From the sequence record OZ196593.1: a stretch of DNA of 64,000 nucleotides. One strand, given 5' to 3'. Under the pieces are notes generated by a model that was not told the DNA's origin, ran no database searches, and saw nothing but the letters and a program-made list of their open reading frames with translations. A program made the position numbers and the translations under genes. Positions 3,789 through 36,331 of the stretch are shown here, piece after piece; within the stretch, counting starts at the first letter, position 1; each line of letters begins with the position of its first letter.

Positions 3789-4648
3789 AATGGACCGAGC
3801 TATTCTATAGCGTTCAGGGTGAGGGGAAATACACTGGTCAAGCTAGTTTATTCTTTCGCTTCTGGGGCTGCAATTTGGAATGTTCAGGGTTTGGTCAAGA
3901 CGATCCAACCGATCCTGATTCGTACGTACTCGACTTCAAAGAATACGACCCTAAGGCGCATAACGTAGAGACGGTCGAAGATTTACCAGTATGGACGCGC
4001 GGCTGTGACTCAAGCTACACATGGGCGAAGAAATACGCACATCTAGCTTCTAAGTCTGAAGTCGAAGACGTTTGTGAAGCGATGCTTGACAAACTACCAA
4101 ATCGTCAATGGGGTGATATTCATCTTGTATTGACGGGCGGCGAAACGATGATGAATCAAAAATCTATCGCTGCTATCATCACGTACTTCGCGGGGATTGG
4201 TAATTTCCCGAAAAACGTGACAATCGAAACTAACGGTACTAAAGTGATGTCGCAAGAATTCGGTGATTTCATCGACCTCGTATCACCGTACACGAAAGTT
4301 AGTTTCAGCGTATCTTTCAAGCTTTTCAACGTTACTGGCGAATTGTCAGAAAAAGCTATCTGCCCGGGCGTAGTAAATCGCTATGCTCGCTATGCAGAGA
4401 CATGGCTCAAGCCGGTTGTCGTCGATACTGACGCATGTTGGGACGAAGTTGACACGCATATCGCGCAATACAAAGCGTGCAGTGCTCTTCACAATGTTCC
4501 CGTGTATATCATGCCTTGTGGTGCTACTCAAGAAGAGCAAGAACAAGACGGGTATATGGCATCGATTGCTAACAAAGCATTGAGTCGTGGTTATAATTTC
4601 TCACTCAGAGCACACGTGTTCATATGGGGAAATGCAGTCGGCACATAA
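3779..4648 (+). CDS. queE: 7-carboxy-7-deazaguanine synthase (radical SAM)
   Basis: ELFYSVQGEG, FFRFWGCNLEC...GCDS cluster motif with a long loop, LTGGE, IETNGT, SLRAHVFIWGN. Confidence 0.88.
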   Translation: MQVKWTELFYSVQGEGKYTGQASLFFRFWGCNLECSGFGQDDPTDPDSYVLDFKEYDPKAHNVETVEDLPVWTRGCDSSYTWAKKYAHLASKSEVEDVCEAMLDKLPNRQWGDIHLVLTGGETMMNQKSIAAIITYFAGIGNFPKNVTIETNGTKVMSQEFGDFIDLVSPYTKVSFSVSFKLFNVTGELSEKAICPGVVNRYARYAETWLKPVVVDTDACWDEVDTHIAQYKACSALHNVPVYIMPCGATQEEQEQDGYMASIANKALSRGYNFSLRAHVFIWGNAVGT

Positions 4649-20491: not shown

Positions 20492-21016
20492 CTATCTGCG
20501 TCCTTTAGTTTTGTTTCTTTTTAGTTTTCGTTTGAGCTTGCGAACTTCTTTACGCTTCGCGATTTTATCAGCTCGTCGCACTGCATCATAATCCGCAGCA
20601 CAAGACGCTGCAAACGCATCGGGCTTGAATACTGGCTCTTGACCCACATATCCGAAGATCGTGCCCTTAGCTTCGTTATACGCGACGCTAGACTTGTGTT
20701 TAGGGTCTGGGTTAATGTCAACGTGTACTTCAAAGCCGCGAGGGCCGCACATTGGCTTAACTTTCAACGCGCATTCACCTGCTTTGTATACTTCGTTCAT
20801 CAAGCGACTACGAATACCATCAGTAGATGACATATAGGCTTTCTCAGTTTCGATTGTTTTGAATACTTGAGCGCCTTTACTGCCTTCCAAGTGAATTATG
20901 ATTACAGTCGCGTAACTGATCATATCACTTTTTCGTTTACTGTCACACCCAACATAGATCGTGCTACTCGGGTGACTATTTTGAATCGCTGTTTCTACAG
21001 CTTCCCAATCGAACAT
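20492..21016 (-). CDS. RNase H-like YkuK family protein
   Basis: IYVGCDS, YATVIIIH, RLMNEV, EVHVDIN, KPDAFAASCAAD motifs. Confidence 0.75.
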   Translation of the reverse strand: MFDWEAVETAIQNSHPSSTIYVGCDSKRKSDMISYATVIIIHLEGSKGAQVFKTIETEKAYMSSTDGIRSRLMNEVYKAGECALKVKPMCGPRGFEVHVDINPDPKHKSSVAYNEAKGTIFGYVGQEPVFKPDAFAASCAADYDAVRRADKIAKRKEVRKLKRKLKRNKTKGRR

Positions 21017-21065: not shown

Positions 21066-22496
21066 TTATAAAGCGTATCGGTCGACGCCGACAGTCTTCA
21101 GCATGATTTTCACTGGCTCAAGCTCACCACCCAACAGCGACGTTAGAATTGAAGGGCTGCAACCCGACACTAACGCTGTGTTCGCTTCACCTGATTTAAC
21201 AGGCACGTTGTCTAGACGACCACGCAAGTTCCAGAACACGAGCTGCGGCATTTCGTAGCCCGCTTGAACGTATAGTTCTTTGATTGCGTCGAAGTTCGTA
21301 GTGTTACGAGTATGCCAGCCACCGCCAGAACGTGCTTGGTCGAATTCCATATCGCTCATGATAAGCAATTTGGTTGGCATTTCGTCTTGCGACAAGTTTG
21401 CCGTACGAGCGCGTTCAAGAAGAACTTCGAAGCATCGTGTGATGTTCGTACTCATATCTTCACCAGAGCGTTGCATGTTGTCAAGACGCGACTTCAAGCT
21501 ATCACCCGTCAACTTGTGAAAGTGTGGGTTGCTTGAGAACGAAATGAATTGATCTTTGAAGATACCCTCATTGCGTTCAGCGACGTAGATGCCAAGAGAC
21601 ATCGCAACGTCTTTACACGTCACAGTACCACCGTGTTCACCGTTGATACCACAGCCCATAGAGCCAGAAACATCAACAACTGGAATCACGCGTTCGTCAG
21701 AGCCTTCCATGTAGTTCGGTAGAGCTTTCCATTGCTCATTCGCAACACGATGGTCACCCATTTTAACGCTGCGAACAACGTCGTACGGGTAAACAGCACC
21801 AGCATTGATCTTCGCTTCACCTTTCACAAGCGATGTGATGTACTCACCGTATGCAGATTCAGCGTTACGACCGAATGCTTTCTGATAGCGTGCAGACGCT
21901 ACAGATGGCAGTTTGCCGAACTCGATCTCGTCCCAATTACGAGCACACATCTTCTGTTCAACAGTGTCAGACAAAAGAGAGATCACTTTACGCCACTGCT
22001 TCGCGTTTACACCAACCGACTTGATTGTGCGCTTGAACACGATAGCGTTTTTGCTGCGCTCACGAGGAAACCACTTAGCAGCAAGCGCGTTTTTGTCATT
22101 GACAATCGCGTGCGTCCAAAGAGTGATAGCATCAGCTTCAAGAGAAGTACCGAACGCAGATACTAAGTCATCGAAACGACCGAGTTCTGGGATCTTGCGC
22201 ATAACTAGACGCGCCACTTCTGGTTGTTCTTTACACAGACGTGCAAAGATTTTGCGGAAAGTACCGCGCTCACCTGCACCGCCACGCACGTCGCGAGACC
22301 ATAGCAAGATGCGAGTTGCAAGCTCAGGGTTTTCACCGAATGCGCGATTAAACGCAGTTAGTGACTGATCATTACCGCGCATAGCGCCGATAGTGAAGAA
22401 CAAGTTTAGACACTCGTTACCCGAAGTGCTGTGCGTAACTGCACCGTTTGCTGTACGTGAATCGTTTGATTGCATAGCGTTCATAAATGCTGACAT
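21066..22496 (-). CDS. DUF2828 + vWA protein (Ro60/TROVE-like RNA-binding by inference)
   Basis: RTANGA..STSG..LNLFF, RDVRGGAGER, GRFDDL, AAKWFPRE, MIDAS VVDVSGSM, LLIMSDMEFD, FWNLR. Confidence 0.75.
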   Translation of the reverse strand: MSAFMNAMQSNDSRTANGAVTHSTSGNECLNLFFTIGAMRGNDQSLTAFNRAFGENPELATRILLWSRDVRGGAGERGTFRKIFARLCKEQPEVARLVMRKIPELGRFDDLVSAFGTSLEADAITLWTHAIVNDKNALAAKWFPRERSKNAIVFKRTIKSVGVNAKQWRKVISLLSDTVEQKMCARNWDEIEFGKLPSVASARYQKAFGRNAESAYGEYITSLVKGEAKINAGAVYPYDVVRSVKMGDHRVANEQWKALPNYMEGSDERVIPVVDVSGSMGCGINGEHGGTVTCKDVAMSLGIYVAERNEGIFKDQFISFSSNPHFHKLTGDSLKSRLDNMQRSGEDMSTNITRCFEVLLERARTANLSQDEMPTKLLIMSDMEFDQARSGGGWHTRNTTNFDAIKELYVQAGYEMPQLVFWNLRGRLDNVPVKSGEANTALVSGCSPSILTSLLGGELEPVKIMLKTVGVDRYAL

Positions 22497-23536: not shown

Positions 23537-23901
23537 TGATAGTCCTTAATGTCGTTGTCGAAGTGACGAATGCACGAGCTATCAAGTCTCGGACGATCAT
23601 CGTCTTCAGTGATTGATGGTAGTGTGTAATTATCGTTAAACGGCTGACCGCTTGCTTTAGCGATTTCGTACGCGTCTGCACGATTGAAATACTCACCACA
23701 ATAGTTGATGAAACCTTGCCCGCGATCACCGAGTTCTTTTCGATGTTCGATTGTACAGCCCGCTTTCTTCAGTGCTTTCATAACACCAGACATGTTACGA
23801 CCGAAGTGACAGCTATCAGCTATCACAAGTTCTTCAGTTGAACCGTCGGGGTATGTTACGCGTATCGCGTTTGCAGCAGCAGAAATAATGTTTACGTGCA
23901 T
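23533..23901 (-). CDS. hypothetical phage protein
   Basis: GQGFIN..GEYFNRADAYEIAKASGQ motif. Confidence 0.6.
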   Translation of the reverse strand: MHVNIISAAANAIRVTYPDGSTEELVIADSCHFGRNMSGVMKALKKAGCTIEHRKELGDRGQGFINYCGEYFNRADAYEIAKASGQPFNDNYTLPSITEDDDRPRLDSSCIRHFDNDIKDYQ

Positions 23902-24248
23902 GTATCGAGCCTCATAAAAATGTTACCGATTTTCTTGTACTGTTTAGACGCCATGATCATGTTCGTCATCTTCAAGTTACCGACTGGATTACTAGTCACA
24001 AGAACAATCGTGTACGGATAATTGCGATGATCCATAGCGTGTGATAGAATATCGCTTCCCTCTTTGCCGACTACATCACCGAGATCATTGTCCATTAGCA
24101 ACGTAATGTCAGTCAAGTTCGTGTGCTTCACGAAATTCATTCCCTGTTCGAACGTTCGAAGTGTCAGCTTTTGAGCTGCATTCACTGTGTCGTTCGTCAA
24201 CTTGTTGATGTCTCGAAGATCATCAATCAAAATATACATGTGTTTCAT
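23892..24248 (-). CDS. cyclic-phosphate-processing receiver-domain-like protein
   Basis: ILIDDLR...LLMDNDLG...G.DI...VTSNPVG...M pattern. Confidence 0.6.
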   Translation of the reverse strand: MKHMYILIDDLRDINKLTNDTVNAAQKLTLRTFEQGMNFVKHTNLTDITLLMDNDLGDVVGKEGSDILSHAMDHRNYPYTIVLVTSNPVGNLKMTNMIMASKQYKKIGNIFMRLDTCT

Positions 24249-24496
24249 TACACAACCTCTAACCAATATGCTAATTCATTTGCTGAAGCTAAAGCAGGCG
24301 TATAAGAAATCCAGTAGTCTAGATTCTGAGACATCGACTCAAGATAGCAATACTCTGAGTCTGCGCTGAAACGATAAATGAACTCATCGTCTATATACGC
24401 ATCGACCACTTTAGAACGAGGATTAACTTTAACATCGAACCCTGCGTTCTTAAACAACGCAATCGCTGTCTCATGTTCTGCTTCAAGTAGCGTCAT
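24248..24496 (-). CDS. hypothetical protein
   Basis: start revised to MTLLEAEH. Confidence 0.55.
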   Translation of the reverse strand: MTLLEAEHETAIALFKNAGFDVKVNPRSKVVDAYIDDEFIYRFSADSEYCYLESMSQNLDYWISYTPALASANELAYWLEVV

Positions 24497-26132: not shown

Positions 26133-26192
26133 ATATTGTACCTTTCATTTCACTTTTCTTCAGCATACTGCATTTTCTAACCGACATAAACA

Positions 26193-26219
26193 AAAAAACC
26201 CGCCTAAAGAGGCGGGTTC
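26193..26219 (-). terminator. terminator at the end of the tRNA cluster
   Basis: AACCCGCC-TCTTTA-GGCGGGTT followed by T7. Confidence 0.8.
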
Positions 26220-26231
26220 ATCGTGCATAAA

Positions 26232-26430
26232 CAGACATTCGTGAACAGTTTTAAAGTCTTTCGCATTAATCACATTTGACTTTCATGTTTAACGATACAT
26301 GAATCCCTACCAACAAGTTGATAGTCTTACCTTCGAGTTTATTGCTTTAAGTCACCGAGAATGCGGCTATGCGTTACTCTATCTCTTATCTCTTATTTAA
26401 GTTTTGTTAGTTGGTTGCTGTACAATGTCT
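26232..26430 (-). ncRNA. stand-alone motif RNA (~200 nt), helix-GTA-CAGCAA family
   Basis: AGACATT-GTA-CAGCAACC ... AATGTCT closing helix; internal hairpins TTCATG/CATGAA and AAAGTC/GACTTT. Confidence 0.65.
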
Positions 26431-26440
26431 TTGCAAAATT

Positions 26441-26529
26441 TGGCGGAGATACTGGGAGTCGAACCCAGAGAACGCTATTAACGTCCGACACCTTAGCAGG
26501 GTGCTGTCATACCATTAGACCATATCTCC
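26441..26529 (-). tRNA. tRNA-Ser(GCT)
   Basis: cloverleaf with long variable arm, loop CTGCTAA, encoded CCA. Confidence 0.92.
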
Positions 26530-26665
26530 AGTTCGGAATGCTGCTCTCATTCTCAACTACATATTTGCTCTTATCGCTGCCGTGTAGTACGAGCTTCGCA
26601 GATCGCTTCCTATAATTTTAAGAGCAGGGCGACTCATACCAGCTCTATTCAAGCGAACTTGAATT

Positions 26666-26743
26666 TGGTGCCCAACCCGAGATTCGAACTCGGAACTTCT
26701 AGCGTTTGAAACTAGCGACTCTGCCAGATTGGCCTAGTTGGGC
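26666..26743 (-). tRNA. tRNA-Leu(CAA), short variable loop
   Basis: stem CTAGT/GCTAG, loop TTCAAAC, CCA. Confidence 0.85.
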
Positions 26744-26755
26744 ATATTCGTTAAT

Positions 26756-26947
26756 TTATGATGTAGTCACCAGTTCATAGCGAAGAATAGAATCGTGTAA
26801 ATCGTCGAGATACGCATATCCCGGATCACCGTCTTTGCACGTCCAATTCGAGAACATCATAGCAGGCTTCGAGTGAGTCATAAACAACACACCGACAGAA
26901 CTGCCACCACTTTCCCAATAAACTCGATATAAACCAGCCTTTTCCAT
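26756..26947 (-). CDS. hypothetical protein
   Basis: 63-aa ORF with RBS between tRNAs. Confidence 0.55.
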   Translation of the reverse strand: MEKAGLYRVYWESGGSSVGVLFMTHSKPAMMFSNWTCKDGDPGYAYLDDLHDSILRYELVTTS

Positions 26948-26970
26948 AATAAATCACTCATAATAAAAAT

Positions 26971-27047
26971 TGGTACGCGTGGGCGGATTCGAACCGCCAT
27001 CCCTGAGATTTTAAGCCTCATGCCTCTGCCAATTGGACCACACGCGC
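26971..27047 (-). tRNA. tRNA-Leu(TAA), short variable loop
   Basis: loop CTTAAAA, CCA. Confidence 0.88.
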
Positions 27048-27049
27048 AT

Positions 27050-27123
27050 TGGAGCTCGTACACAGAATCGAACTGTGACCACGTGATTTGCAATCACTTA
27101 TACTACCGTTATACGATACGAGC
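27050..27123 (-). tRNA. tRNA-Cys(GCA)
   Basis: loop TTGCAAA, U73, CCA. Confidence 0.88.
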
Positions 27124-27133
27124 AAATGTACTT

Positions 27134-27210
27134 TGGGGTGACAGACGGGGATCGAACCCGCATTTTCCGGAATCACAACCCGGAGGTATTTCCACTTCAC
27201 CCACTGCCAC
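27134..27210 (-). tRNA. tRNA-His(GTG)
   Basis: loop TTGTGAT, C73; encoded -1 base is T. Confidence 0.88.
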
Positions 27211-27281
27211 ACCAAAGTACACTCTGGGACATATAACGTTTATCAACCGGACTCATTTACGTGGGTCATTCGAGCAAAGCA

Positions 27282-27587
27282 CTACTTTGCTAGTAAGTTT
27301 TCTTTCTTGAGATATATACTATCACTTGAGAGTTCGCGAGTAAACATATTTCTGAAATAAATTTGCACATCGTCTTCAGTCGTGTTCGACTCAATTTTCT
27401 GCGCTAATTCGAGAATTTTGCTTCGCTTGTATCCCTTTCGCCAACAGTCAAACATCAGTTTGTCCATTTCTTTCAGTTTTTCGACCTGATTCGGGTGTAC
27501 ATATTCGCGTGTTTCAAGTAATGACATAGTATATTGCTCATAAAGAATGGTAGTCCCTGAGAATTTCGAAATCTCGACCTTCGCCAT
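27282..27587 (-). CDS. hypothetical protein (true start probably MSLLETRE, downstream of tRNA-Val)
   Basis: the called 5' end overlaps tRNA-Val, so the start needs moving. Confidence 0.45.
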   Translation of the reverse strand: MAKVEISKFSGTTILYEQYTMSLLETREYVHPNQVEKLKEMDKLMFDCWRKGYKRSKILELAQKIESNTTEDDVQIYFRNMFTRELSSDSIYLKKENLLAK

Positions 27588-27622
27588 GTAAAAGCGGTGC
27601 TCTGCCTCTGAGCTAAGGGACT
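27548..27622 (-). tRNA. tRNA-Val(TAC)
   Basis: loop TTTACAT, CCA. Confidence 0.87.
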
Positions 27623-27627
27623 ATAAT

Positions 27628-27703
27628 TGGAACGTGTAACGAGATTCGAACTCGTACCTTCGGTTTGGAAGACCGTAATGCTACCGTTAAACACCATACA
27701 CGC
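27628..27703 (-). tRNA. tRNA-Gly(TCC)
   Basis: loop CTTCCAA, U73, CCA. Confidence 0.9.
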
Positions 27704-27995
27704 ATTGTTAATCAGACGCATTGAACAAGTCTTGAATTGCTTTCAAGTTGCTCAACTCTACTTCAAGTGTTCTTATAAAGAACGGGTTAGTCTCTACAGA
27801 GAGACGATATTCAACATCGCGAATGAATCGACCGATGTTGCCCTTGCTTAGTGTAAAGTAGTCATGCTTCTTTCTCTTCGTTTGAGGTTAGAATTAGATG
27901 AACGTGTTCGTTAACTTCTTGCTCAATCTGCCATTGTTCATAGACATATTCAGCATACAAAAGTGTTTCGTACATAATTCACCTTTCTTAAAATG

Positions 27996-28072
27996 TGGTA
28001 GTGACTCTGAGGTTCGAACTCAGTACCAGCGGCGTATGAAACCACGACTTTACCATCATAAGCTAAGTCACC
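27996..28072 (-). tRNA. tRNA-Met(CAT) (elongator Met or Ile2)
   Basis: loop TTCATAC, CCA. Confidence 0.8.
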
Positions 28073-28234
28073 AAAGCAGATATTAACGTATTTAATCAGC
28101 ACACGGGCTTGACACCACATTGTTTGTGGTCTACGTGAAGAACCTCTGCACAACAATCCCGCTCTAATTGCGTTATGTGGTGACTGTCACGAGGAATCTA
28201 GTCTTCTTTAAGTGCCTTTCGGCTGTATCAAGTA

Positions 28235-28473
28235 CAGACAATAACGAAGTGTTTTTTCGTCTTTTACATAAATCGCAGTTGACTATCTTGTTACTCTAAC
28301 AAGCAAGTATCGACTACCTCAGCGTCGCGCCTAGACTGTGTATTTCTACACGCCACATCTTTCGTTACAAGTCTCGACCTTAGCACGTTGTTGCTGTGCT
28401 GAACGTCTCGAACCCACGCTAAGACCTAATCATTGTTTTAGTAGATTAGTAGTTTGGTTGCTGCATATTGTCT
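28235..28473 (-). ncRNA. stand-alone motif RNA (~240 nt), helix-ATG-CAGCAA family
   Basis: AGACAAT-ATG-CAGCAACC ... ATTGTCT closing helix; internal hairpins AGCAC/GTGCT, GTGTA/TACAC, CTTGTT/AACAAG. Confidence 0.65.
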
Positions 28474-28570
28474 TACCTCATGTTCTCAGTCAACGCCCGA
28501 GGGTAGTTGCTTCATCAAACACAAAGCTCTTATTTTTCAAGTTCACACTATCGTAGTGACTCTCGTGATA

Positions 28571-28646
28571 TGGCATCCCCAGAAAGATTTGAACTTTCAA
28601 CCCCGAATTTAGAAGATTCGTGCTCTTCCAATTGAGCTATGAGGAC
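28571..28646 (-). tRNA. tRNA-Arg(TCT)
   Basis: loop CTTCTAA, CCA. Confidence 0.92.
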
Positions 28647-28722
28647 ATCAATAAGATTCGAACCATAAGATCTTGTGACACGATGGTAGTAAAGAGAGTG
28701 TCTATCTCATGTGTTCGAAATT

Positions 28723-28798
28723 TGGTGGAGCTTGAGGGTTACGATCCCTCTACTTCTCCGTGCAAGGGAGATGTTTTACCGATTAGCACTAAAGCCCC
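28723..28798 (-). tRNA. tRNA-Ala(TGC)
   Basis: G3-U70, loop CTTGCAC; atypical T-loop ATCGTAA. Confidence 0.87.
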
Positions 28799-28805
28799 AA
28801 ATTGT

Positions 28806-29018
28806 CTATTTTAACTCTGTGACGCCTATATTTTTCCAATCAAACAGACCATCGACATCTTCAAGCGATTCGCCAGTCACGTCTGCAATATAAGCAGCGA
28901 CTTTCGATTCGATTTCGTCATTACTTAGAGACTCATCAACAGTGAAAATCTCTTCGTTGTTATTACCACCGAATGTGCCGTTAATGTCGTATTCACACCA
29001 AACTGATATGTATTTCAT
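28806..29018 (-). CDS. hypothetical acidic protein
   Basis: 70-aa ORF with GAG RBS. Confidence 0.6.
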   Translation of the reverse strand: MKYISVWCEYDINGTFGGNNNEEIFTVDESLSNDEIESKVAAYIADVTGESLEDVDGLFDWKNIGVTELK

Positions 29019-29043
29019 AATGTCTCACAAAGTTAATAAAATA

Positions 29044-29118
29044 TGGTGCTCCCGGACAGACTCGAACTGCCATAACCTGATTACAAAACAGGGATAATCG
29101 CCTTTATATTACGGGAGC
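29044..29118 (-). tRNA. tRNA-Thr(TGT)
   Basis: loop TTTGTAA, CCA. Confidence 0.85.
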
Positions 29119-29122
29119 GAAA

Positions 29123-29236
29123 CTGAGTGTCGTTTATACCGCGTCTCCAAGACCTGAGATACCAACTCAGCATGGGATTCGAACCCACCGACGTTTCTTG
29201 TATCGAAAGAAATTTTAAATTGCTGTAAACACTCTT
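29123..29236 (-). ncRNA. circularly permuted tRNA-like RNA (YrlA/Y-RNA-like topology)
   Basis: GAGTGT-TTA-CAGCAA / hairpin TTTCTT-TCGATAC-AAGAAA / T-arm GTGGG-TTCGAAT-CCCAT / closed acceptor CTGAG-TTGGTAT-CTCAG / D-like GTCT-TGG-AGAC / ACACTC. Confidence 0.75.
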
Positions 29237-29243
29237 AGTATTT

Positions 29244-29317
29244 TGGCTGGGGATAACGGACTCGAACCGATACTGCGAAAGTCAAAGTTTCGTATGCTGC
29301 CATTACATCAATCCCCT
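29244..29317 (-). tRNA. tRNA-Gln(TTG)
   Basis: loop CTTTGAC, G73, CCA; A1-A72 mismatch. Confidence 0.88.
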
Positions 29318-29325
29318 ATTGTTCT

Positions 29326-29550
29326 TTAGCGACTCGAATTGATCTCATCGATCATTCGTTTAGCTAGTTTCGTAGCTAGTGCTTTATCAGCATCGCCAGT
29401 TGTTTCTATGTCGTATGCAATTTTACTCACATACTTTGAGTCTAGCGCACCCGCTGATTGTTTAGACCAGTGATCCTTGACTTTCTGATATTTCGTCATG
29501 TCAATCGAATCTTTTGTCGCTTCACCCAAAAATTCTGCTAATGTTTTCAT
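29326..29550 (-). CDS. internal head protein candidate
   Basis: exact TATAAATA late promoter at 29580-29587; N-terminus MKTLAEFLGE resembles the T4 capsid-targeting sequence. Confidence 0.65.
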   Translation of the reverse strand: MKTLAEFLGEATKDSIDMTKYQKVKDHWSKQSAGALDSKYVSKIAYDIETTGDADKALATKLAKRMIDEINSSR

Positions 29551-29739
29551 ATCTCTATTCTTATTAAAGTGTAAAAACATATTTATATGCAAGATAACAT
29601 ACACGACGGCGTAAGTAGTCGTTCTTATGTTTAGACTAGAAATCCACGTCACATCATTAATGCTATAATTGCGCCACTCTCTACTATGAATATGTTATGC
29701 ATTATTCATGCAGACTCTTCTTGCGCTGTAAATTATCTT

Positions 29740-29815
29740 TGGCGGAACTGACGGGGCTCGAACCCGCTTCCTTCTCCGTGACAGGGAGGTATGCACCCAG
29801 TTACACCTCAGCTCC
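29740..29815 (-). tRNA. tRNA-Asp(GTC)
   Basis: loop CTGTCAC, G73, CCA. Confidence 0.92.
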
Positions 29816-29834
29816 CCAAAGATAACTCTTTGTA

Positions 29835-29912
29835 TTAAGACACTGTAATCGTTTGGTTTTTTTTCTTCAAATAAAAAATACTGGTTTGTTTGCAGAATGA
29901 TTACTATCTTAA
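29835..29912 (-). ncRNA. minimal motif RNA (78 nt), helix-ATT-CTGCAA family
   Basis: TTAAGATA/TGTCTTAA and GTAATC/GATTAC helices enclosing ATT-CTGCAAAC and an A/U-rich loop. Confidence 0.65.
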
Positions 29913-29915
29913 ATC

Positions 29916-29989
29916 TGGCAGGGGCATAGAGATTCGAACTCTAACGAACAGGTTTGGAATCTGTCATGCTGCCATTACATCATGCCCCT
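29916..29989 (-). tRNA. tRNA-Trp(CCA)
   Basis: loop TTCCAAA, CCA. Confidence 0.9.
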
Positions 29990-30037
29990 ATTGCGTATGA
30001 GGTGGCTTGAATCAGTGGTCACACTCACGCTAAAATT

Positions 30038-30111
30038 TGGTACTCACGAAGAGAATCGAACTCTTATCTGACGATTATCGGTCGTCTGCTTTACCGTTAA
30101 GCTACGCGAGT
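30038..30111 (-). tRNA. tRNA-Ile(GAT)
   Basis: loop CCGATAA (C33), CCA. Confidence 0.85.
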
Positions 30112-30176
30112 AGAGTACGCTCGAAAGCGCACAATGTTAATCGGTTAAGTGACTAGCTCGACCAATGTAACATATT

Positions 30177-30269
30177 TGGAGGAAGATAACAGAGTCGAAC
30201 TGTCACCGCGCTACTAACGCAATGGGCTGGTTTTCAAGACCAGTTGCGAACCACATCGCCCTATCTTCC
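30177..30269 (-). tRNA. tRNA-Ser(TGA)
   Basis: loop CTTGAAA, long variable arm, CCA. Confidence 0.88.
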
Positions 30270-30274
30270 TTTAA

Positions 30275-30523
30275 TTACTTATGTCGTCCCCAATACATCT
30301 TATCAAAGCTGTTTAGGTATTCTTCGACTTTAGCTACATCAGCCGCACTAACAACCCATTCGTTGTCTTGAGTCGTGCGTTTATTCGCAGGAACTGCTTT
30401 AGCGCCTAATTTAGCCATTGTGTTTCTGTGTCGTTCGCGATCCATTGAGCCACTAAAAAGTGAGCCAGATACGCCGTACGTAACGTCCGTTGCTTCTGCA
30501 AGAAACTCTTGTAAAGTTTTCAT
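30275..30523 (-). CDS. internal head protein candidate
   Basis: N-terminus MKTLQEFLAE is close to the T4 capsid-targeting sequence MKTYQEFIAE; TCTAAATA upstream. Confidence 0.7.
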   Translation of the reverse strand: MKTLQEFLAEATDVTYGVSGSLFSGSMDRERHRNTMAKLGAKAVPANKRTTQDNEWVVSAADVAKVEEYLNSFDKMYWGRHK

Positions 30524-30568
30524 GTTTTCCACCATTGTCTTAAAACAATATTTAGACGTTTTAAAAAT

Positions 30569-30647
30569 TGGATGCGTGGGGTTGGATTCGAACCAACGAC
30601 CTCTAGCTTATGAGACTAGTGAGCTGACCTGACTGCTCTACCCCGCA
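30569..30647 (-). tRNA. tRNA-Met(CAT), initiator-like acceptor/D region
   Basis: TGCGGGG TAGAGCAG..AGCTC; loop CTCATAA; acceptor has a bulged A; lacks the GGG/CCC anticodon-stem triad. Confidence 0.8.
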
Positions 30648-30651
30648 ACTA

Positions 30652-30846
30652 TTACTTATTGAACTGAACTACGCAAGTATCTGATTGATACATTATCATG
30701 CCAGTTGCTTCCGCGTCTATATGAACGATGCAGCCGTTTGCCCCATCTTCACCGCGTGATGCTACATCTTTAATCGAAATGCCACTTGAACAAGCTGTCA
30801 ATGACAGTGCAAGTGCTAATGCTGCTATTGCTTTCATGATGTTCAC
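30652..30846 (-). CDS. small lipoprotein
   Basis: signal peptide with lipobox LTAC. Confidence 0.6.
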   Translation of the reverse strand: MNIMKAIAALALALSLTACSSGISIKDVASRGEDGANGCIVHIDAEATGMIMYQSDTCVVQFNK

Positions 30847-30853
30847 CTTAATT

Positions 30854-30938
30854 TGGTGGGCGATAGAGGAATCGAACCTCTCTACCCTTTCGGGTCACGG
30901 GGTTACAGCCCGCTGTCTCACCTTGAGACGTACCGCCC
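30854..30938 (-). tRNA. tRNA-Tyr(GTA)
   Basis: loop CTGTAAC, variable arm CCC-GAAA-GGG, CCA. Confidence 0.9.
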
Positions 30939-30944
30939 ATAAAT

Positions 30945-31018
30945 TGGTACTCCGTACGGGAGTCGAACCCGTCCCTTTAGATTGAAAGTCTAACGATCTA
31001 CCAATAATCTAACGGAGC
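30945..31018 (-). tRNA. tRNA-Glu(TTC)
   Basis: loop CTTTCAA, CCA. Confidence 0.9.
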
Positions 31019-31142
31019 ATTGAAAAATTATTTATTAGCAAACTAGCAAGTTATCTGAGATAATCATTTAACGGGCCCAGCTAGTAAACTAATAGATAAT
31101 TTCTCATCTAGAGATAGTTTAGTGACTTCTCAACGGTCAATA

Positions 31143-31217
31143 TGGTGCGTCGCCTGAGATTCGAACTCAGACTTTTCTGGTTAAAAGCCAGATGTACTAC
31201 CATTATACGAACGACGC
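31143..31217 (-). tRNA. tRNA-Lys(TTT)
   Basis: loop CTTTTAA, CCA. Confidence 0.9.
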
Positions 31218-31223
31218 ATTAAC

Positions 31224-31298
31224 TGGTGCACCCTCTCGGAATCGAACCGAGCACTGTGGGACTTCACTCCACCGCTTTTCCTGATAAGCTAAGGGTAC
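31224..31298 (-). tRNA. tRNA-Phe(GAA)
   Basis: loop GTGAAGT, CCA. Confidence 0.83.
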
Positions 31299-31304
31299 TT
31301 TATT

Positions 31305-31379
31305 TGGCGGACGTGGAGAATTTCGAAATCTCGACCCCGGTGTTAACAGCACCGCGCTCTGCCTCTGAGCTACACATCC
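31305..31379 (-). tRNA. tRNA-Asn(GTT)
   Basis: loop CTGTTAA, G73, CCA. Confidence 0.9.
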
Positions 31380-31384
31380 AAATT

Positions 31385-31461
31385 TGGTACGCAGAGAGAG
31401 ATTCGAACTCTCAACTCCTAGTTTCTAAGACTAGCGGCTCTGCCAATTGGCCTACCTGCGC
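31385..31461 (-). tRNA. tRNA-Leu(TAG), short variable loop
   Basis: loop CTTAGAA, CCA. Confidence 0.88.
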
Positions 31462-31474
31462 ACTGTGTAAATAA

Positions 31475-31549
31475 TGGTCGGAGTAGAAGAATTCGAATCT
31501 TCACCGCTCGGCCCCAAACCGACTATGCTGCCATTAACACCATACTCCG
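31475..31549 (-). tRNA. tRNA-Pro(TGG)
   Basis: C1-G72, loop TTTGGGG, CCA. Confidence 0.88.
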
Positions 31550-31577
31550 AAAAACTTTTGTAGAACTTCGTTCTTAC

Positions 31578-31775
31578 ATTGTACATGATGTTTTCTTCGT
31601 TGTAAACATCTTTTTTGAAAAACTTTTCGTTCGTTTTCGAACGTTTAAATGCTTTTCTCTATTGTACATGATGTTTTCGTCATTGTAAACATCTTTTTTA
31701 AATCTTTTTGAATGACTTAACGTTTTTGTTTTAACACGTTAATCATATCACTCGTTTACGACTCGTTAAACACTT
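31578..31775 (-). promoter_or_regulatory. three tandem early-type promoters
   Basis: two near-identical GTTTACA-17 nt-TACAAT repeats (about 31580-31615 and 31660-31698) and GTTTAA...TATGAT. Confidence 0.7.
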
Positions 31776-31847
31776 ATTTGTGAATAATTTCGTTAAATTC
31801 TATCATCGCGACAGTAGATAACGAGACACGGTCCTAAACGTATCGTT

Positions 31848-31923
31848 TGGCACTCGATATAAGATTCGAACTTATAACCTGCGCCTTCGTAGGACGCTGC
31901 TCTTCCAATTGAGCTAATCGAGC
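31848..31923 (-). tRNA. tRNA-Arg(ACG)
   Basis: loop CTACGAA, CCA. Confidence 0.92.
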
Positions 31924-32292
31924 ATTAAAGCTTGTTTGCTTTCTTTGTTTATCATACTCTGCTTTGAAAGCATGTTAAACAAAGAATTTCAGTTTATTTC
32001 GCCCATAAAAAAGGACGCTAATCTGCGTCCTCAAGTATACTTCTATGTTATACTTTCGGACTACATTCGTGGATCCCATTTCTGGTTGCCAAACGTCGGA
32101 TTCGCCAGATATACCGATACTGAGCTAAAGCGCATTTCGCTTCGTAAAATCTCAATATGTGTATTAGAATGTGGCATCGTGGCTCTCTTTTCGAACGTAA
32201 AAATTGTTGTTTTGTTTTTTCTATAATTGTACTTATAAGACTAAAATCGAGGTTTCGTGCGTTTTTTGCAAAAAACCTCGAAAAAAGTGAAA

Positions 32293-32532
32293 TTATTTTT
32301 TAAAGTGCTTTCTTTTATTGCACTCAGCTAAGATTTCATTGTCATAATGATTCTGAAGCTGCTTGAATTTCTTGTGCTGATCTGGCGTTAGCTCATTCTC
32401 ATCACGAAGATTTTTCAAGAACCCAAGAGGTTTACGAAACGACTTGCGATACGCGTCTAGACGTTGATCAGTCAAACCGACTAGTTGTTTAGGCGTTAGC
32501 AATGTCTTATTAATGTCAAAGTTCTTACTCAT
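32293..32532 (-). CDS. hypothetical basic protein
   Basis: 79-aa ORF with AGGGG RBS. Confidence 0.6.
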   Translation of the reverse strand: MSKNFDINKTLLTPKQLVGLTDQRLDAYRKSFRKPLGFLKNLRDENELTPDQHKKFKQLQNHYDNEILAECNKRKHFKK

Positions 32533-32554
32533 GTGTTACCCCTTGTATTGAAAT

Positions 32555-32669
32555 TGGCTGACCGATGCGGGACTCGAACCCACGACCACGTGCTTAACAG
32601 GCAATTAGAAATGCGGTAGCGATACTTATCAATATCATTTACGTGCTCTACCACTGAGCTAATCGGTCA
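32555..32669 (-). ncRNA. tRNA-Asn(GTT)-like RNA with a 38-nt insertion in the anticodon stem
   Basis: canonical D and T arms; removing 32603-32640 restores CGTGC-CTGTTAA-GCACG; CCA end. Confidence 0.75.
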
Positions 32670-32674
32670 ATTGT

Positions 32675-32919
32675 TTAGTTCGCTTTTGCAGTGCACCGAG
32701 CCACCTCAGAATTGATACATTTCGGTTGACGCGCATTCGGATGGTTACGCTTTGCGTCGTGAGCCTGTCAGCGATGCCGCTTTCGCAATGCACCCCGTTT
32801 CTCACCTACTCTGCCCTACAGACGTTATCTGCTTGGTTAACAATTGCACTCGCATTAGGTATAACATGTCACCGTCATCTTCCGGACGATTTCAGTGTAT
32901 GCACTCAAAAGCGAACTAA
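32675..32919 (-). ncRNA. structured ncRNA (~245 nt), unknown family
   Basis: 14-bp terminal inverted repeat plus GTGCA/TGCAC; hairpins ATCGTC/GACGGT, TGC-GAAA-GCG, ACGC/GCGT. Confidence 0.6.
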
Positions 32920-32932
32920 TGTTGATTCTATT

Positions 32933-33481
32933 CTACTTCTCTCGCAATGTAAACAGCAGATTGCGATAATCGAAGTTTCGTTTGTTCTTTGTATTGTAGA
33001 AGCTAGTCCAGTCGATTGCAACGGGACAATTCTTACTACCGACACGAGCAATGAATATCTCGTGTGTCGCGCTGTGCTTCGCGTTATAAGCTCTTACTCG
33101 TTTTTCATAGTGAGCTATGTATTCTGCACAAGCAGCGTTGTAATCAGCTCTAGAGAACGTCTTACCTTTCATAAAGCGTGCATCAAGATACGGACGAATA
33201 ACTCGAACGCGTTCTCCCGACCATGCCATATTAAAGCTGTTTTCAATTTCACCTAGAATTTGACCAGTCTTTAAGTTACGGCTCAGTATGACCCAACAGC
33301 GTGTACGACGATAGTCTTCAAAACGCATCACCTTAATGTGTGCATTAATGAATTCATCGCGTTTAGCGTTGCACTCAATGCGTGCTGCACGACGCTGTTC
33401 TTCAGTCATCGACTCTCGAACTTCTTTCGGATACAATGTAGCAAAGCGTTTCGGGCAATCTGCCATCGTTAGCTTTTTCAT
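32933..33481 (-). CDS. hypothetical protein
   Basis: 182-aa ORF. Confidence 0.65.
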   Translation of the reverse strand: MKKLTMADCPKRFATLYPKEVRESMTEEQRRAARIECNAKRDEFINAHIKVMRFEDYRRTRCWVILSRNLKTGQILGEIENSFNMAWSGERVRVIRPYLDARFMKGKTFSRADYNAACAEYIAHYEKRVRAYNAKHSATHEIFIARVGSKNCPVAIDWTSFYNTKNKRNFDYRNLLFTLREK

Positions 33482-33688
33482 ATCATACCTCTCTTGCGTT
33501 TAAGTTGCGAACGCTCAATTTGATTGAAGACTTGCTTATCTTTTGCTTTATTGCGTCGAGAATTACCCCAACGACTTCCAGCACATACACCAAAGCGGTC
33601 TTTTTTAAGCTTCTTAGCTAACCACAATGGTACTTCGACACGAGCACGTAAGTAGTGCTTTGCGATGTCTTTATAAGTCTTGCCCATG
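33478..33688 (-). CDS. small basic protein (start MGKTYK)
   Basis: GAGG RBS before MGKTYK; the longer call overlaps an RNA T-arm. Confidence 0.55.
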
Positions 33689-33703
33689 ATAATTTCCTCT
33701 TGT

Positions 33704-33941
33704 TGCCGCTCCGTGGAATCGAACCACGTCAAACACAACACCTCGTCAGCCCAATAAGAGTTTCGAAGTAAGAGCTTACTAGCACATTAAAGCACGGGGC
33801 ATTATTTCTCTCAAGCAGTTTTCGACCACCGCGTGAGCTTTCTTATCCCCAGTCCCAGTGATTCAGAACGAAACATGATAGCGAGTCATGAGTTGAACTA
33901 ATGTTGGGAAAACACTGCGTATTGTACACCGAGTAAGCGGC
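33704..33941 (-). ncRNA. 238-nt RNA with tRNA-like acceptor stem and T-arm
   Basis: GCCGCTT/GAGCGGC stem, CGTGG-TTCGATT-CCACG T-arm, structured ~200-nt interior. Confidence 0.6.
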
Positions 33942-33955
33942 ATTGTTAATAAACT

Positions 33956-34075
33956 TGGTGCCCTACGTGAACGTTGAACGTTTTTCTACTTAGCTTCCAT
34001 CTACCTCACTCAACGAAGAGCTATAGATTCCGTCAAGGTCTACTTCCACTTGACTAAGCGATTCAAACGTAGGAC
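33956..34075 (-). ncRNA. 120-nt CCA-ended non-tRNA RNA (T4 RnaC/RnaD-like class)
   Basis: GTCCTACG/CGTAGGGC-A-CCA; three-way junction GCTTAG/CTAAGT, TCAAG/CTTGA, TCTA/TAGA. Confidence 0.6.
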
Positions 34076-34114
34076 ATATTTTGAAAGTAGTCTCGTAAAA
34101 CTACTTTGAGAATA

Positions 34115-34192
34115 TGGTGACCCTCGTGGGACTCGAACCCAACTATCTTTCGGTTATGAGCCGACTGCTTTTACCAGTTAAGCTAAAGGGCC
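34115..34192 (-). tRNA. tRNA(CAT), Ile2-like
   Basis: GGCCCTT acceptor and loop CTCATAA resemble bacterial tRNA-Ile2. Confidence 0.8.
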
Positions 34193-34193
34193 A

Positions 34194-34559
34194 TTATGTT
34201 TCTAGCCATCTACCAATCTTTGCAGCGAAGATGTTTTCTTCTTCGTTGATTAGCGCAGTCGATTTCATTTGATGAAACATATCTTGCTTGTGAAGCGTAT
34301 CAAGTTTGACTGCACATTGCAACAACTCTTTTACGCTTCGCATAATTTCTTCTGAATCAAGCTGCGACGTTTCAGGATGATAAATCAAATTCTGAAGCAC
34401 AGCTTCTATGTTGCCGTAACAACCCATACCAATAAAATTGATGATAAGTCGATACTGCATTTCTACTGAGAATGAACAATGCTTGCGCAAATTGCGCTTA
34501 ACGACTTCACATACTAGCAACTTCTCTTCGAGTTCTTGCTTTATTGCTGTAAACTTCAT
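34194..34559 (-). CDS. hypothetical protein
   Basis: 121-aa ORF with GAGGTG RBS. Confidence 0.65.
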   Translation of the reverse strand: MKFTAIKQELEEKLLVCEVVKRNLRKHCSFSVEMQYRLIINFIGMGCYGNIEAVLQNLIYHPETSQLDSEEIMRSVKELLQCAVKLDTLHKQDMFHQMKSTALINEEENIFAAKIGRWLET

Positions 34560-34575: not shown

Positions 34576-34698
34576 TGGTGGAGAGTGCGGGATTCGAACC
34601 ACGCGGCCAAAAGATTTACTTAGTTAGTGTTTGCAGCATGAATACTTGACAATATTCTGTCAACGTTCTTTTGCTCTACCAGACTGAGCTAACTCTCC
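34576..34698 (-). ncRNA. tRNA-like RNA whose anticodon loop is replaced by a ~52-nt motif module
   Basis: acceptor GGAGAGT/ACTCTCC-ACCA, D, T and AAAGA/TCTTT stem intact; the loop contains a hairpin then ATG-CTGCAAAC. Confidence 0.75.
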
Positions 34699-34710
34699 AT
34701 TTAAAACACA

Positions 34711-34834
34711 TTGAGCAGGGTGCAGGATTCGAACCTGCGTCACGATCTTAGAATGATATGCTGTTTGGGTTGCTGAATACAAGCTATACAACTTGCGTTT
34801 ATGCTACGTGTGCTAGCCACTACACCAACCCTGC
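34711..34834 (-). ncRNA. tRNA-Arg(TCT)-like RNA with a 49-nt insertion in the anticodon stem
   Basis: removing 34758-34806 restores CGATC-ATTCTAA-GATCG; ends in TCAA (no CCA); 17-bp extended terminal stem. Confidence 0.75.
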
Positions 34835-34883
34835 TCAATGTGTTCTAGTGCAATGCCATATGAACTCACATGGCATCACTGAA

Positions 34884-35019
34884 CCTGTTTTATATTGCCT
34901 TAGCTAACTAACACAATCTGAAATCGTGCGCTTTAATAAAGGGAGTGCGTCCCTCTTCGCCAGTTAGCATAGATGTGTTGCTATGCACCCATTTTTCAAT
35001 CATGTCCAAGGCAAACAGG
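34884..35019 (-). ncRNA. putative structured ncRNA
   Basis: nested helices CCTGTTT/AAACAGG, TGCCTT/AAGGCA, GCTAACT/AGTTAGC, GCATAG/CTATGC. Confidence 0.45.
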
Positions 35020-35087
35020 ACTATGAATACGAGTGCGAGAAGATATACAATCAAATTGAAACACCTCGCTAAAAAGTTAGAGCATAT

Positions 35088-35208
35088 TGGTCGTGCGTAC
35101 TAGAATCGAACTAGTCCCACGATCTCCTAATGATATGCGTTATTGGTTGCTGAATACTTACTTGTCAGTAAGCGTATGCTACGTGTGCTGCCACTACACC
35201 AACGCACG
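35088..35208 (-). ncRNA. tRNA-Leu(TAG)-like RNA with a 47-nt insertion in the anticodon stem
   Basis: removing 35135-35181 restores CGATC-ATTAGGA-GATCG; ACCA end; 21-bp extended terminal stem. Confidence 0.75.
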
Positions 35209-35223
35209 ACCAATATGCTCTAG

Positions 35224-35486: not shown

Positions 35487-35625
35487 GTTAATCTTAGCAG
35501 CTTTTTCGCTGAAGTCAAACACTTTTTTCAAATTTCTTTCATCGAATCAAGAGTTTGTGTTGCTGTCTCTCGACTCGATGAAATACATTCTACAGGAAAA
35601 CAAAGCGAAGTCAACAAGTATTTTC
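35487..35625 (-). promoter_or_regulatory. two tandem sigma70-like promoters heading the RNA cluster
   Basis: TTGACT...TAGAAT and TTGACT...TAAGAT with A-rich UP elements. Confidence 0.7.
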
Positions 35626-35631
35626 AACTTT

Positions 35632-35883
35632 TTACGATTGAATGATAATACCGCTTTCCGTCTCACCGCGCTCAAGAGCTGCGTGCTTAATCTGTAGTTG
35701 TGCTACTGCTTGTTGAAGTTCTGTGATCGTCTGATCATATAGCTTCATGTTGCTTTGCATGTGTTTAATCTGATCGCTCTGCAAACCAACGATATAGGTA
35801 AGCAAGATGATGCTTTCATTATCTTGCAGTTCTTCACCGTCGTTGTATTTCTTCAGAACAGATTGAATTGTAATATCAGCCAT
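35632..35883 (-). CDS. coiled-coil hypothetical protein
   Basis: start revised to MADIT. Confidence 0.6.
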   Translation of the reverse strand: MADITIQSVLKKYNDGEELQDNESIILLTYIVGLQSDQIKHMQSNMKLYDQTITELQQAVAQLQIKHAALERGETESGIIIQS

Positions 35884-36331
35884 TGTTTTCAGCCCATGAC
35901 AAATCGAGTGGTTCAACGTATTCGTCTACAAGTCGAACTTCGGCTTCGACGAACAAGGGAGTGATTGCATCGTCATACGAAAGCGTGACGTGCGGAGTAT
36001 AGTCAGGGTAATCGTGAGTACCACCGATAGAGATAAGGTCTTCATGACGCGCTACAAGCTCAGGACATTTCATCTTCGCAACAACTGCGTGTTTGCCGTC
36101 TTGAGTTTTCCAGCAATCGATATACTCAATAGTTGCTACGAATGTCGTATCAACGGCAGGCACATCAATTTGATTGCGACTGTATAGAACAGTGACGTGA
36201 AATTTATCTGGATCTAAAGGATTTGCTAGACGAAGCGATGTCTGCAAGCGAACTAACTCTTGTTTACTCGATTCGTCTAGTTTGATACCAACGTACGTCC
36301 CCTGACCTTCAAGGAACGTAGATAGTTTCAT
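35876..36331 (-). CDS. 57B: 2H phosphoesterase gp57B (Acb1 family, anti-CBASS)
   Basis: FHVTVLYSR and YTPHVTLSY HxT motifs; WKTQDG; position next to 57A. Confidence 0.88.
   Translation of the reverse strand: MKLSTFLEGQGTYVGIKLDESSKQELVRLQTSLRLANPLDPDKFHVTVLYSRNQIDVPAVDTTFVATIEYIDCWKTQDGKHAVVAKMKCPELVARHEDLISIGGTHDYPDYTPHVTLSYDDAITPLFVEAEVRLVDEYVEPLDLSWAENNG

Follow-up and report, generated by a model that had tools for sequence, protein, structure and literature searches.

Bacterial YrlA RNAs consist of a Ro60-binding terminal stem and a domain that resembles a tRNA. They are substrates of tRNA-modifying enzymes and are cleaved by RNase P, and in both bacteria and phages Y RNAs built from a terminal stem and such a domain adjoin Ro60 genes (PMC4201824). 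The Ro60 of a phage was found to bind the host PNPase together with the phage's own Yrl RNAs, and to slow or attenuate it (PMC12135203). Surveys of jumbo phages mention ROT/TROVE proteins "with a tRNA-like partner" (PMC7824862). Here we describe a family of tRNA-shaped RNAs, E1 to E4, in a stretch of 64,000 nt from sequence record OZ196593.1 (in the following, the window), and a Ro60-like protein encoded on the same strand, of which these RNAs may be the partners. All E-RNA features lie on the minus strand. The window was 100% identical to the Vibrio phages K566 and K567 and 72-82% identical to KVP40, nt-1, VH7D, phi-Grn1 and others; these identities mark its source, as judged from sequence, as a KVP40-like, T4-type vibriophage.

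In the original prediction E3 and E4 had been read as complete tRNAs with Arg-UCU and Leu-UAG anticodons, each interrupted by an insert. Two further copies with the same module, E2 (34576-34698) and E1 (32559-32668), had been overlooked. The elements of the four RNAs are given below, where H1 is the hairpin within the shared module, H2 the hairpin that follows it and R1 the covariance model of the module.

32559-32668, minus strand: E1, sibling with the anticodon-stem base CACG/CGUG and the module; H1 at 32620-32637 (alifold)
34576-34698, minus strand: E2, open tRNA-shaped sibling that ends in ACCA and begins 12 nt after E3; H1 at 34640-34657
34704-34845, minus strand: E3, whole RNA with a terminal stem of 16-17 bp and no CCA; the former "Arg-UCU" (34711-34834)
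34745-34757, minus strand: E3 hairpin H2, AUC-AUUCUAA-GAU; 8-nt loop in most orthologues
34779-34796, minus strand: E3 hairpin H1, GCAAGUU-GUAU-AGCUUGU; R1 38.2 bits
35078-35222, minus strand: E4, whole RNA with a 19-bp terminal stem; the former "Leu-UAG" (35088-35208)
35088-35115, minus strand: E4 T arm ACUAG-UUCGAUU-CUAGU, 3' strand of the acceptor, A73 and CCA
35122-35134, minus strand: E4 hairpin H2, AUC-AUUAGGA-GAU, formerly taken for an anticodon stem-loop; loop variable in orthologues
35145-35155, minus strand: E4 module tail AUUCAGCAACC; family consensus nUnCnGCA
35156-35173, minus strand: E4 hairpin H1, GCUUACU-GACA-AGUAAGU, the conserved module hairpin; R1 43.0 bits
35185-35199, minus strand: E4 D arm GUGU-AGUGGCA-GCAC, invariant in E3 and E4
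35209-35222, minus strand: E4 leader arm UAGAGCAUAUUGGU, paired with the trailer arm 35078-35091

E3 (34834-34711) and E4 (35208-35088) start with a 7-bp acceptor stem, U8-G9 and the D arm GUGU-AGUGG(C)(U)A-GCAC. On the 5' side of the anticodon arm A26 and C27-G28 are followed by an insert of 49 nt in E3 and 47 nt in E4, after which come A29-U30-C31, a loop of 7 nt and GAUCG; the variable loop that follows is short, and the T arm is standard. The D arm, the T arm and the GG and UUCGA loop signatures of a canonical tRNA are all present. Much of the original description was confirmed by this: the canonical acceptor, D and T arms and the insert after position 28 were all found on the minus strand, removal of the insert restored the CGAUC/GAUCG stems with the loops AUUCUAA and AUUAGGA, and both inserts followed the pattern UAGCAU, hairpin, AUUCAGCAACC, GCAU. 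The lack of a CCA in the Arg-like copy, E3, was likewise borne out. The acceptor helix of both RNAs runs unbroken into the flanks and forms a terminal stem of 16-20 bp. The A73-CCA encoded by E4 is locked inside a covarying helix of 19-20 bp, in which UGGU of the leader pairs with the encoded ACCA. Closed by these stems, E3 and E4 therefore offer no free ends for aminoacylation. The minimum free energy of E4 was -57.1 kcal/mol (z = -6.05) and that of E3 had a z of -4.18; the two RNAs are 75% identical. Neither was among the 26 tRNAs called by ARAGORN in the window, and the Rfam tRNA model did not match either of them even at E<=10. An alternative local pairing (GUAGC/GCAAC around H1; CAUAUC/GAU-C-GUG) was thermodynamically comparable to the pairing first proposed, and the two are inseparable because the bases concerned never vary.

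The siblings E1 and E2 have no terminal stem but open, CCA-type ends. In E2 the anticodon stem AAAGA/UCUUU surrounds the module, and the Rfam tRNA model matched with 49.8 bits and a 52-nt insertion (R1 39.1 bits); for E1 the values were 49.1 bits with a 49-nt insertion (R1 33.2 bits). A fifth class, E5, has a tRNA-Asp-like body and was found in relatives but is missing from the window. Copy number differs among the phages; the E5 of KVP40 lies at 4295-4407 of locus L001. In all classes the anticodon stem, of 2-5 bp depending on the class (CACG/CGUG in E1, E3 and E4, AAAGA/UCUUU in E2, CCGGC/GCCGG in E5), opens into two branches, H1 with the tail and then the class-specific hairpin H2. E1, E2 and E5 are listed in the KVP40 GenBank record as tRNA-Pseudo-3, -4 and -5, and related records hold calls such as "tRNA-Asn/Phe/Cys/Val with intron"; together with the KVP40 pseudo-tRNAs these are orthologues of E1, E2, E5 and E3. 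The genes are thus the same as those described here, but there they were treated as pseudogenes or as intron-bearing tRNAs.

The module is 37 nt long and aligned without gaps over the five paralogue classes (25 distinct sequences), with six invariant positions. It is composed of an A-rich lead, the 6-8 bp hairpin H1 topped by Y-U-[GNNA]-A-G, and the tail nUnCnGCA, in which U26, C28, G30, C31 and A32 never changed. Across the classes 94.9% of the H1 cells were paired and all seven pairs covaried (7/7); at the loop-closing pair a U:A to A:U flip occurred once, which supports a GNNA tetraloop. R1 scored 33-43 bits on E1-E4, which were training sequences, and at most 17 bits on the rest of the 64 kb. 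The same model found nothing in the T4 tRNA region. A GTDB scan for host homologues gave 11 chance matches without tRNA context, an IMG/VR scan returned only KVP40 and VH7D, and a metagenome scan returned unrelated tRNAs. One of the metagenomic sequences, contig Ga0210057_1010586 (locus L032, 3363-3455), carries an unrelated tRNA in which 22 nt (CUCUUAA plus 15 extra nt) lie within the anticodon stem AAAGA/UCUUU; a tRNA-Lys(CUU)-like gene may have gained a small insertion here.

Several other identities were considered for the module and rejected. H1 as a mimic of an anticodon loop leaves stem mismatches in the 7-nt-loop register, while the tetraloop register is 95% paired and has the U:A/A:U flip. 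For a promoter inside the module the spacings between the TTGACA-like loop and the TATCAT-like box are unfit, and the stems covary as RNA. The mini-ORF (open reading frame) in the E2 module (AUG CUG CAA...) varies in frame and length among the orthologues. For a CRISPR-repeat mimic, a type III antitoxin mimic, a boxB/N-type hairpin and a boxA-like tail the sequences do not seem to fit.

Orthologues of every window copy were present in all KVP40-like phages examined, including Schizotequatrovirus, Mylasvirus and the more distant phage 1.081.O. For the covariation analysis 16 distinct E3/E4 sequences from 9 phages were used. In the cloverleaf-plus-hairpin model 99.1% of the cells were paired and 21 of the 41 pairs were compensatory; when the partner columns were shifted by 1-3, pairing fell to 27-49%. 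The compensatory pairs were found in the terminal stem (11/20), in the insert hairpin H1 (6/7) and in the T stem (4/5). The D arm and the junction sequences are invariant and therefore untested by covariation. Because 99% pairing was kept through many double substitutions, neutral pseudogene decay is excluded. The comparison of orthologous loci that had been proposed as a check gave no sign of random decay, and the structure was kept in the 9 phages with its 21/41 compensatory pairs. Phage 1.081.O (locus L034, 3112-3230) has one copy of the E3/E4 type, and its H2 loop CUUCAAA resembles a UCA anticodon loop.

The supposed anticodon loop behaved differently. In E3 the H2 loop AUUCUAA occurs in the window lineage only; it is AUUCAUAA in six phages, AUUUCCAA in two and CUUCAAA in 1.081.O, so that the loop is 7 or 8 nt long (AUUCAUAA and AUUUCCAA having 8 nt) and holds different triplets among orthologues. 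In E4 the loop is AUUAGGA or AUAGGGA. Since loop length and triplet change between close relatives, the loop is not used for decoding, and the reading of E3 and E4 as Arg-UCU and Leu-UAG tRNAs could not be upheld. As had been noted at the outset, both anticodons are already served by intact tRNAs, tRNA-Arg(TCT) at 28571-28646 and tRNA-Leu(TAG) at 31385-31461; both belong to a cluster of 26 ordinary tRNAs (26441-34192, minus strand) that serves all 20 amino acids according to ARAGORN. We concluded from the sequence comparison that E3 and E4 are non-decoding, tRNA-shaped non-coding RNAs, and that neither Arg/Leu decoding nor splicing is supported. An assignment to tmRNA was also discarded: ARAGORN found none, the 3:70 pair is A:U or G:C instead of G3:U70, and the AUG frame of E2 is not kept in orthologues.

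A scan of the larger ORFs of the window brought up a candidate protein partner. Its gene shares strand and gene block with the tRNA cluster, which it follows downstream, and has the following neighbours.

20492-21016, minus strand: RNase H-like protein (PF04308), directly downstream of the Ro60-like gene; the pair is kept in a metagenomic T4-like contig
21066-22496, minus strand: Ro60-like protein of 476 aa, helical-repeat ring plus vWA domain with a DxSxS MIDAS; the proposed partner
23892-24266, minus strand: cREC_REC (cyclic-phosphate-processing receiver domain) protein, upstream of the Ro60-like gene

The 476-aa protein belongs to the Pfam families DUF2828 and DUF7788 and to PHROG 850, "RNA-binding protein"; the MIDAS residues DxSxS are invariant among 40 homologues. 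An AlphaFold (AF2) model built from these 40 homologues had a pLDDT of 77 and a pTM of 0.70. When the model was compared with the PDB by Foldseek, the top five matches were all Ro60, among them the Ro60 of Thermus phage phiLo, Xenopus Ro and the complex of Ro60 with misfolded pre-5S rRNA. These five matches covered the full length (E 1e-7 to 1e-6, TM 0.56-0.59), and all later ones covered the vWA domain only. The protein is also 30% identical over its full length to a mycobacteriophage "Ro-like RNA binding protein". On the strength of the predicted fold the product of 21066-22496 is Ro60-like; the family counts 711 phage records. The PF04308 and cREC neighbours recur in other T4-like phages. 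In the FelixO1-like coliphage DE7 (locus L039, 6001-13029) a tRNA cluster follows directly after the Ro-like gene, and in Campylobacter phage F348 (locus L040, 5306-7377) three tRNAs stand directly before it. Since these large phages are unrelated, the adjacency of DUF2828 genes and tRNA clusters suggests that the protein family is functionally tied, in general, to phage tRNAs or tRNA-like RNAs.

A second occurrence of module and Ro60-like gene was found in Aeromonas phage AsFcp_1 (genus Angelvirus), whose Ro60-like protein is 47% identical to that of the window. Here R1 gave two matches to sequences on which it had not been trained, with 35.2 and 33.0 bits (E 4e-7 and 1.5e-6), and both fell in tRNA-shaped RNAs arranged in tandem. 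Copy 1 is closed by a 17-bp terminal stem (z = -5). Copy 2 is open, has a GCCA end and was matched by the Rfam tRNA model with 54 bits over 117 nt. The closed and the open copy are 13 nt apart, which mirrors the closed E3 and the open E2, 12 nt apart. Downstream of the Ro60-like gene and sharing its strand, the pair is 2.4 kb away from it, a distance that agrees with the published definition for Y RNAs (<=4 kb, same strand; PMC4201824), and 9 kb from the tRNA cluster of that phage.

From the conserved structure and the linkage to a Ro60-like gene in two phage groups we tentatively favour the reading that E1-E4 are Y-RNA-like tRNA mimics and partners of the phage Ro60-like protein, although we would not call it probable. 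The E RNAs would then act with the phage's own Ro60-like protein in the way bacterial YrlA-type Y RNAs do. The conserved module, the terminal stem or both would dock on the Ro60-like ring, and the tRNA-like body would bind a host enzyme that recognises tRNAs or takes part in RNA decay. The resulting ribonucleoprotein could redirect or block host RNA turnover, repair or tRNA-directed attack during infection. Among the options first put forward was a protein-tethered decoy for anticodon nucleases. Its core, a non-decoding and protein-associated tRNA mimic, is supported in spirit by the structural selection, the Ro60-like gene and the AsFcp_1 linkage; the part about anticodon nucleases is weighed below with the decoys.

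Compared with YrlA (PMC4201824; RF02553), the E RNAs are alike in their length of about 110-145 nt, in the pairing of the 5' and 3' ends into a stem (E3, E4) and in a tRNA-like domain with D and T arms. They are also alike in having no usable CCA end, in lying on the same strand as a Ro60-type gene and in occurring in several copies per genome. They differ in topology: YrlA is permuted, with the Ro stem at the anticodon position and the acceptor as a closed hairpin, whereas the E RNAs have the terminal stem as a continuation of the acceptor and the special module in the anticodon arm. Further differences are the unconserved GNCGAA, the unmatched Rfam model, the 10-13 kb to the Ro60-like gene and the open CCA-type ends of E1 and E2. 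The Ro60 of Thermus phage phiLo (PMC12135203; PDB 9L5Y) shares with the window protein a phage-encoded ring plus vWA domain and is its best structural match. In both systems the partner RNAs, in the window the proposed ones, are phage-encoded and the capture of a host RNA-decay enzyme has been proposed. The phiLo RNAs Yrl1 and Yrl2, however, are not tRNA-shaped; they have a simple stem-bulge-stem form with a CGAA motif and are encoded directly upstream of the gene. The protein identity is only 16% in the structural alignment.

A number of observations weigh against a partnership with the Ro60-like protein. Although they share its strand, the E RNAs of the window are 10-13 kb away from the Ro60-like gene, compared with 4 kb at most for published YrlA RNAs. 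The published Ro-binding motif of the 5' strand (GNCGAAN0-1G / GGUCCGA) is only approximated, by GGUCGAG in E4 of 8 phages and by GGUCGUG in the window, and a GGUCGAG-like motif is absent from E3 and from AsFcp_1 copy 1. The Rfam YrlA model gave a single match in the window (34640-34766, minus strand) of 28.2 bits, compared with a gathering score of 69, and this match is an artefact of two adjacent tRNA-like RNAs, being made up of the E3 T arm and the E2 D arm. The circular permutation of the tRNA-like part seen in YrlA is missing here. The module was not found in three sampled Ro-like loci outside the KVP40 and Angelvirus groups: the loci of DE7 and F348 had no module, and the mycobacteriophage locus had no YrlA match at gathering level. 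In addition, the linkage could result from a shared T4-like gene order, and the cluster's other structured RNAs, RA, RC and RD (see below), are equally eligible as partners.

Still more tentatively, the E RNAs might represent a new, non-permuted class of Y RNA, the unrecognised partners of the DUF2828 Ro60-like proteins that hundreds of large phages encode beside their tRNA clusters. In such a particle the ring would be docked by the anticodon-arm module or the terminal stem, and the tRNA body would hold a host enzyme that recognises tRNAs, be it a decay exonuclease, an enzyme of repair or a defence nuclease. A literature search gave no description of the E-RNA family, of the shared module or of the Ro60-like partner. 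If the partnership holds, genes that have been filed as "pseudo-tRNAs" since the publication of the KVP40 genome would gain a function, and the Ro60-like family with its 711 phage records, for which we did not find RNAs identified in the literature, would gain candidate RNA partners. The tRNA mimicry of Y RNAs would then reach the T4-type phages, in a topology other than that of YrlA. The role of the phage Ro60 particle in infection, with RNA turnover, tRNA repair and counter-defence as candidates, could be tested in tractable phage-host pairs.

Among the other explanations, decoys that work independently of Ro60 fared best, although we regard them as unlikely. In this case the bodies would mimic host tRNAs and absorb tRNA-directed nucleases or toxins (anticodon nucleases, OLD/PARIS-type Toprim), and the rebuilt anticodon arm would make them uncleavable. 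The bodies look more like tRNAs of host type than of phage type. That of E5 matches E. coli tRNA-Asp in all 5426 genomes, that of E2 has tRNA-Lys as its best, weak match, and the 3' half of E3 matches tRNA-Arg with 85% over 45 nt; none was close to the phage's own tRNAs when compared with them. For E2 and E3, however, the matches have weak E-values, and the bodies of E4 and E1 had no host tRNA match. We take the host-like sequences as a lead towards host-tRNA mimicry and not as proof. Phage tRNAs are known to counter tRNA-directed nucleases (PMC10264068, PMC11464382), and OLD removes the anticodon arm (PMC12445682), both of which would suit a decoy. A parallel is the T5 tRNA-Lys that escapes the anticodon nuclease in the case of PARIS (PMC11464382, PMC10264068), which is likewise encoded in a cluster and has an altered anticodon arm that matters in the conflict with the host; it is, however, a functional decoder with point changes, and the E RNAs cannot decode. 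Decoys of this kind leave unexplained why one specific module with invariant bases is present in all five classes. To our knowledge, no such nuclease has been described for these hosts.

A role in mRNA processing appears less likely again. The bodies would serve as RNase P and 3'-processing signals that free and stabilise the interleaved small mRNAs, and the module would be purely structural. Co-transcripts of tRNAs and mRNAs are normal in T4-type tRNA clusters. In the window a ribosome-binding site and a small conserved ORF follow 10-30 nt after E4, E2 and E1 (34908-35054, 34194-34559 and 32293-32532, respectively), and RA likewise precedes a small ORF. Ordinary tRNAs would suffice for this purpose, however, and such a role would explain neither why the module is invariant nor why E3 and E4 have closed terminal stems, nor the E3-E2 tandem; furthermore, the AsFcp_1 pair lies apart from the tRNA cluster.

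We consider it very unlikely that E3 and E4 are precursor tRNAs from which the 47-49 nt are excised and the halves ligated into functional Arg and Leu tRNAs, as the original prediction had also suggested. In favour of excision, both window copies are left with a perfect 5-bp stem carrying a loop of 7 nt once the insert is taken out, the sequences at the junctions (CACGUAGCA and GCAUAUCAU) do not vary, and T4-type phages have RNA ligases and a polynucleotide kinase. The position of the insertion, in the anticodon arm of a full cloverleaf at a non-canonical site (28/29) as in some archaea, also recalls the intron-bearing precursor tRNAs of archaea and eukaryotes. Against it, orthologue loops have 8 nt or different triplets, so that the "exon" anticodon loop is not conserved, and E1, E2 and E5, which share the module, would yield no anticodon loop under any excision. 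E3 has no CCA, and the ends of both RNAs are paired. The earlier statements that there is no bulge-helix-bulge and that the insert is too short for a group I intron (47-49 nt) agreed with our results: on inspection for two 3-nt bulges with a 4-bp helix between them, the 4-nt flanks of the would-be bulges at the invariant junctions CACG^UAGCA and GCAU^AUCAU are non-complementary, and Rfam at E<=10 gave only weak tRNA-clan matches, with no ribozyme, riboswitch or intron family. We know of no splicing endonuclease in host or phage. The adjoining gene at 35876-36331 (minus strand), labelled "57B RNA ligase" in relatives, was considered as the splicing ligase and dropped; its product is actually Acb1, an anti-CBASS cyclic-nucleotide phosphodiesterase (PF23474, E 1e-44).

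That the RNAs are decaying tRNA pseudogenes, as the KVP40 labels tRNA-Pseudo-3, -4 and -5 for E1, E2 and E5 imply and as the failure of tRNA finders on E3 and E4 might suggest, is hardly credible, being contradicted by the covariation (99% pairing upheld by many double substitutions across two phage genera) and by a module conserved across paralogues and into an Aeromonas phage.

Other structured RNAs were noticed in the tRNA cluster. RA (33701-33941, minus strand) is a conserved structured RNA, about 245 nt long, whose acceptor stem and T arm resemble those of a tRNA and which contains a large multi-helix insert. In 7 phages 36 of its 71 predicted pairs were compensatory, and it has an invariant GUCGAA hairpin loop. 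Its end is GCCA in KVP40 and ACA in the window and is followed by a very basic 69-aa ORF. RA had no Rfam family match and is a possible Ro60 partner. RC (26190-26432) and RD (28225-28480), both on the minus strand, are paralogous RNAs of about 230-250 nt that are conserved in KVP40. Both have an AGACAWU/AWUGUCU closing stem with RURCAGCAAC beside the 5' arm, and the CAGCAACCAA motif that recurs outside the E RNAs corresponds to the 5' arms of RC and RD. RC, whose end is an intrinsic terminator, closes the tRNA cluster and lies about 3.7 kb upstream of the Ro60-like gene. RB (32675-32919, minus strand), an element directly upstream of E1, is closed by a 20-bp terminal inverted repeat, measures about 245 nt and was found only in the window lineage and in phage F86; it may be a recent insertion or another non-coding RNA.

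The gene order 1-57A-57B-tRNA cluster is the same as in T4. There, the small stable RNAs species 1 and 2 (rnaC, rnaD; PMC3014915), of unknown role, are co-transcribed with a T4-type tRNA cluster in this neighbourhood, but they lack the R1 module and any recognisable sequence similarity to the E RNAs, and they lie at the end of the cluster, the E RNAs at its beginning.

Between E4 and E3 a conserved hydrophobic ORF of 48 aa with a TTG start (34908-35054, minus strand) has counterparts in the same place in KVP40 (KVP40.0319) and in phage 1.081.O. Three small basic ORFs on the minus strand (33478-33687, 32933-33481 and 32293-32532, with pI 11.1, 9.9 and 9.8) are interleaved with the structured RNAs and are candidate RNA-binding proteins. 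The neighbouring small ORFs had no Pfam, PADLOC or PDB match, and for the 182-aa ORF the single-sequence AF2 model (pLDDT 48) was too poor for use. Upstream of E4 one further feature was recorded.

35587-35614, minus strand: sigma-70-like promoter match TTGACT-16-TAGAAT, by consensus only

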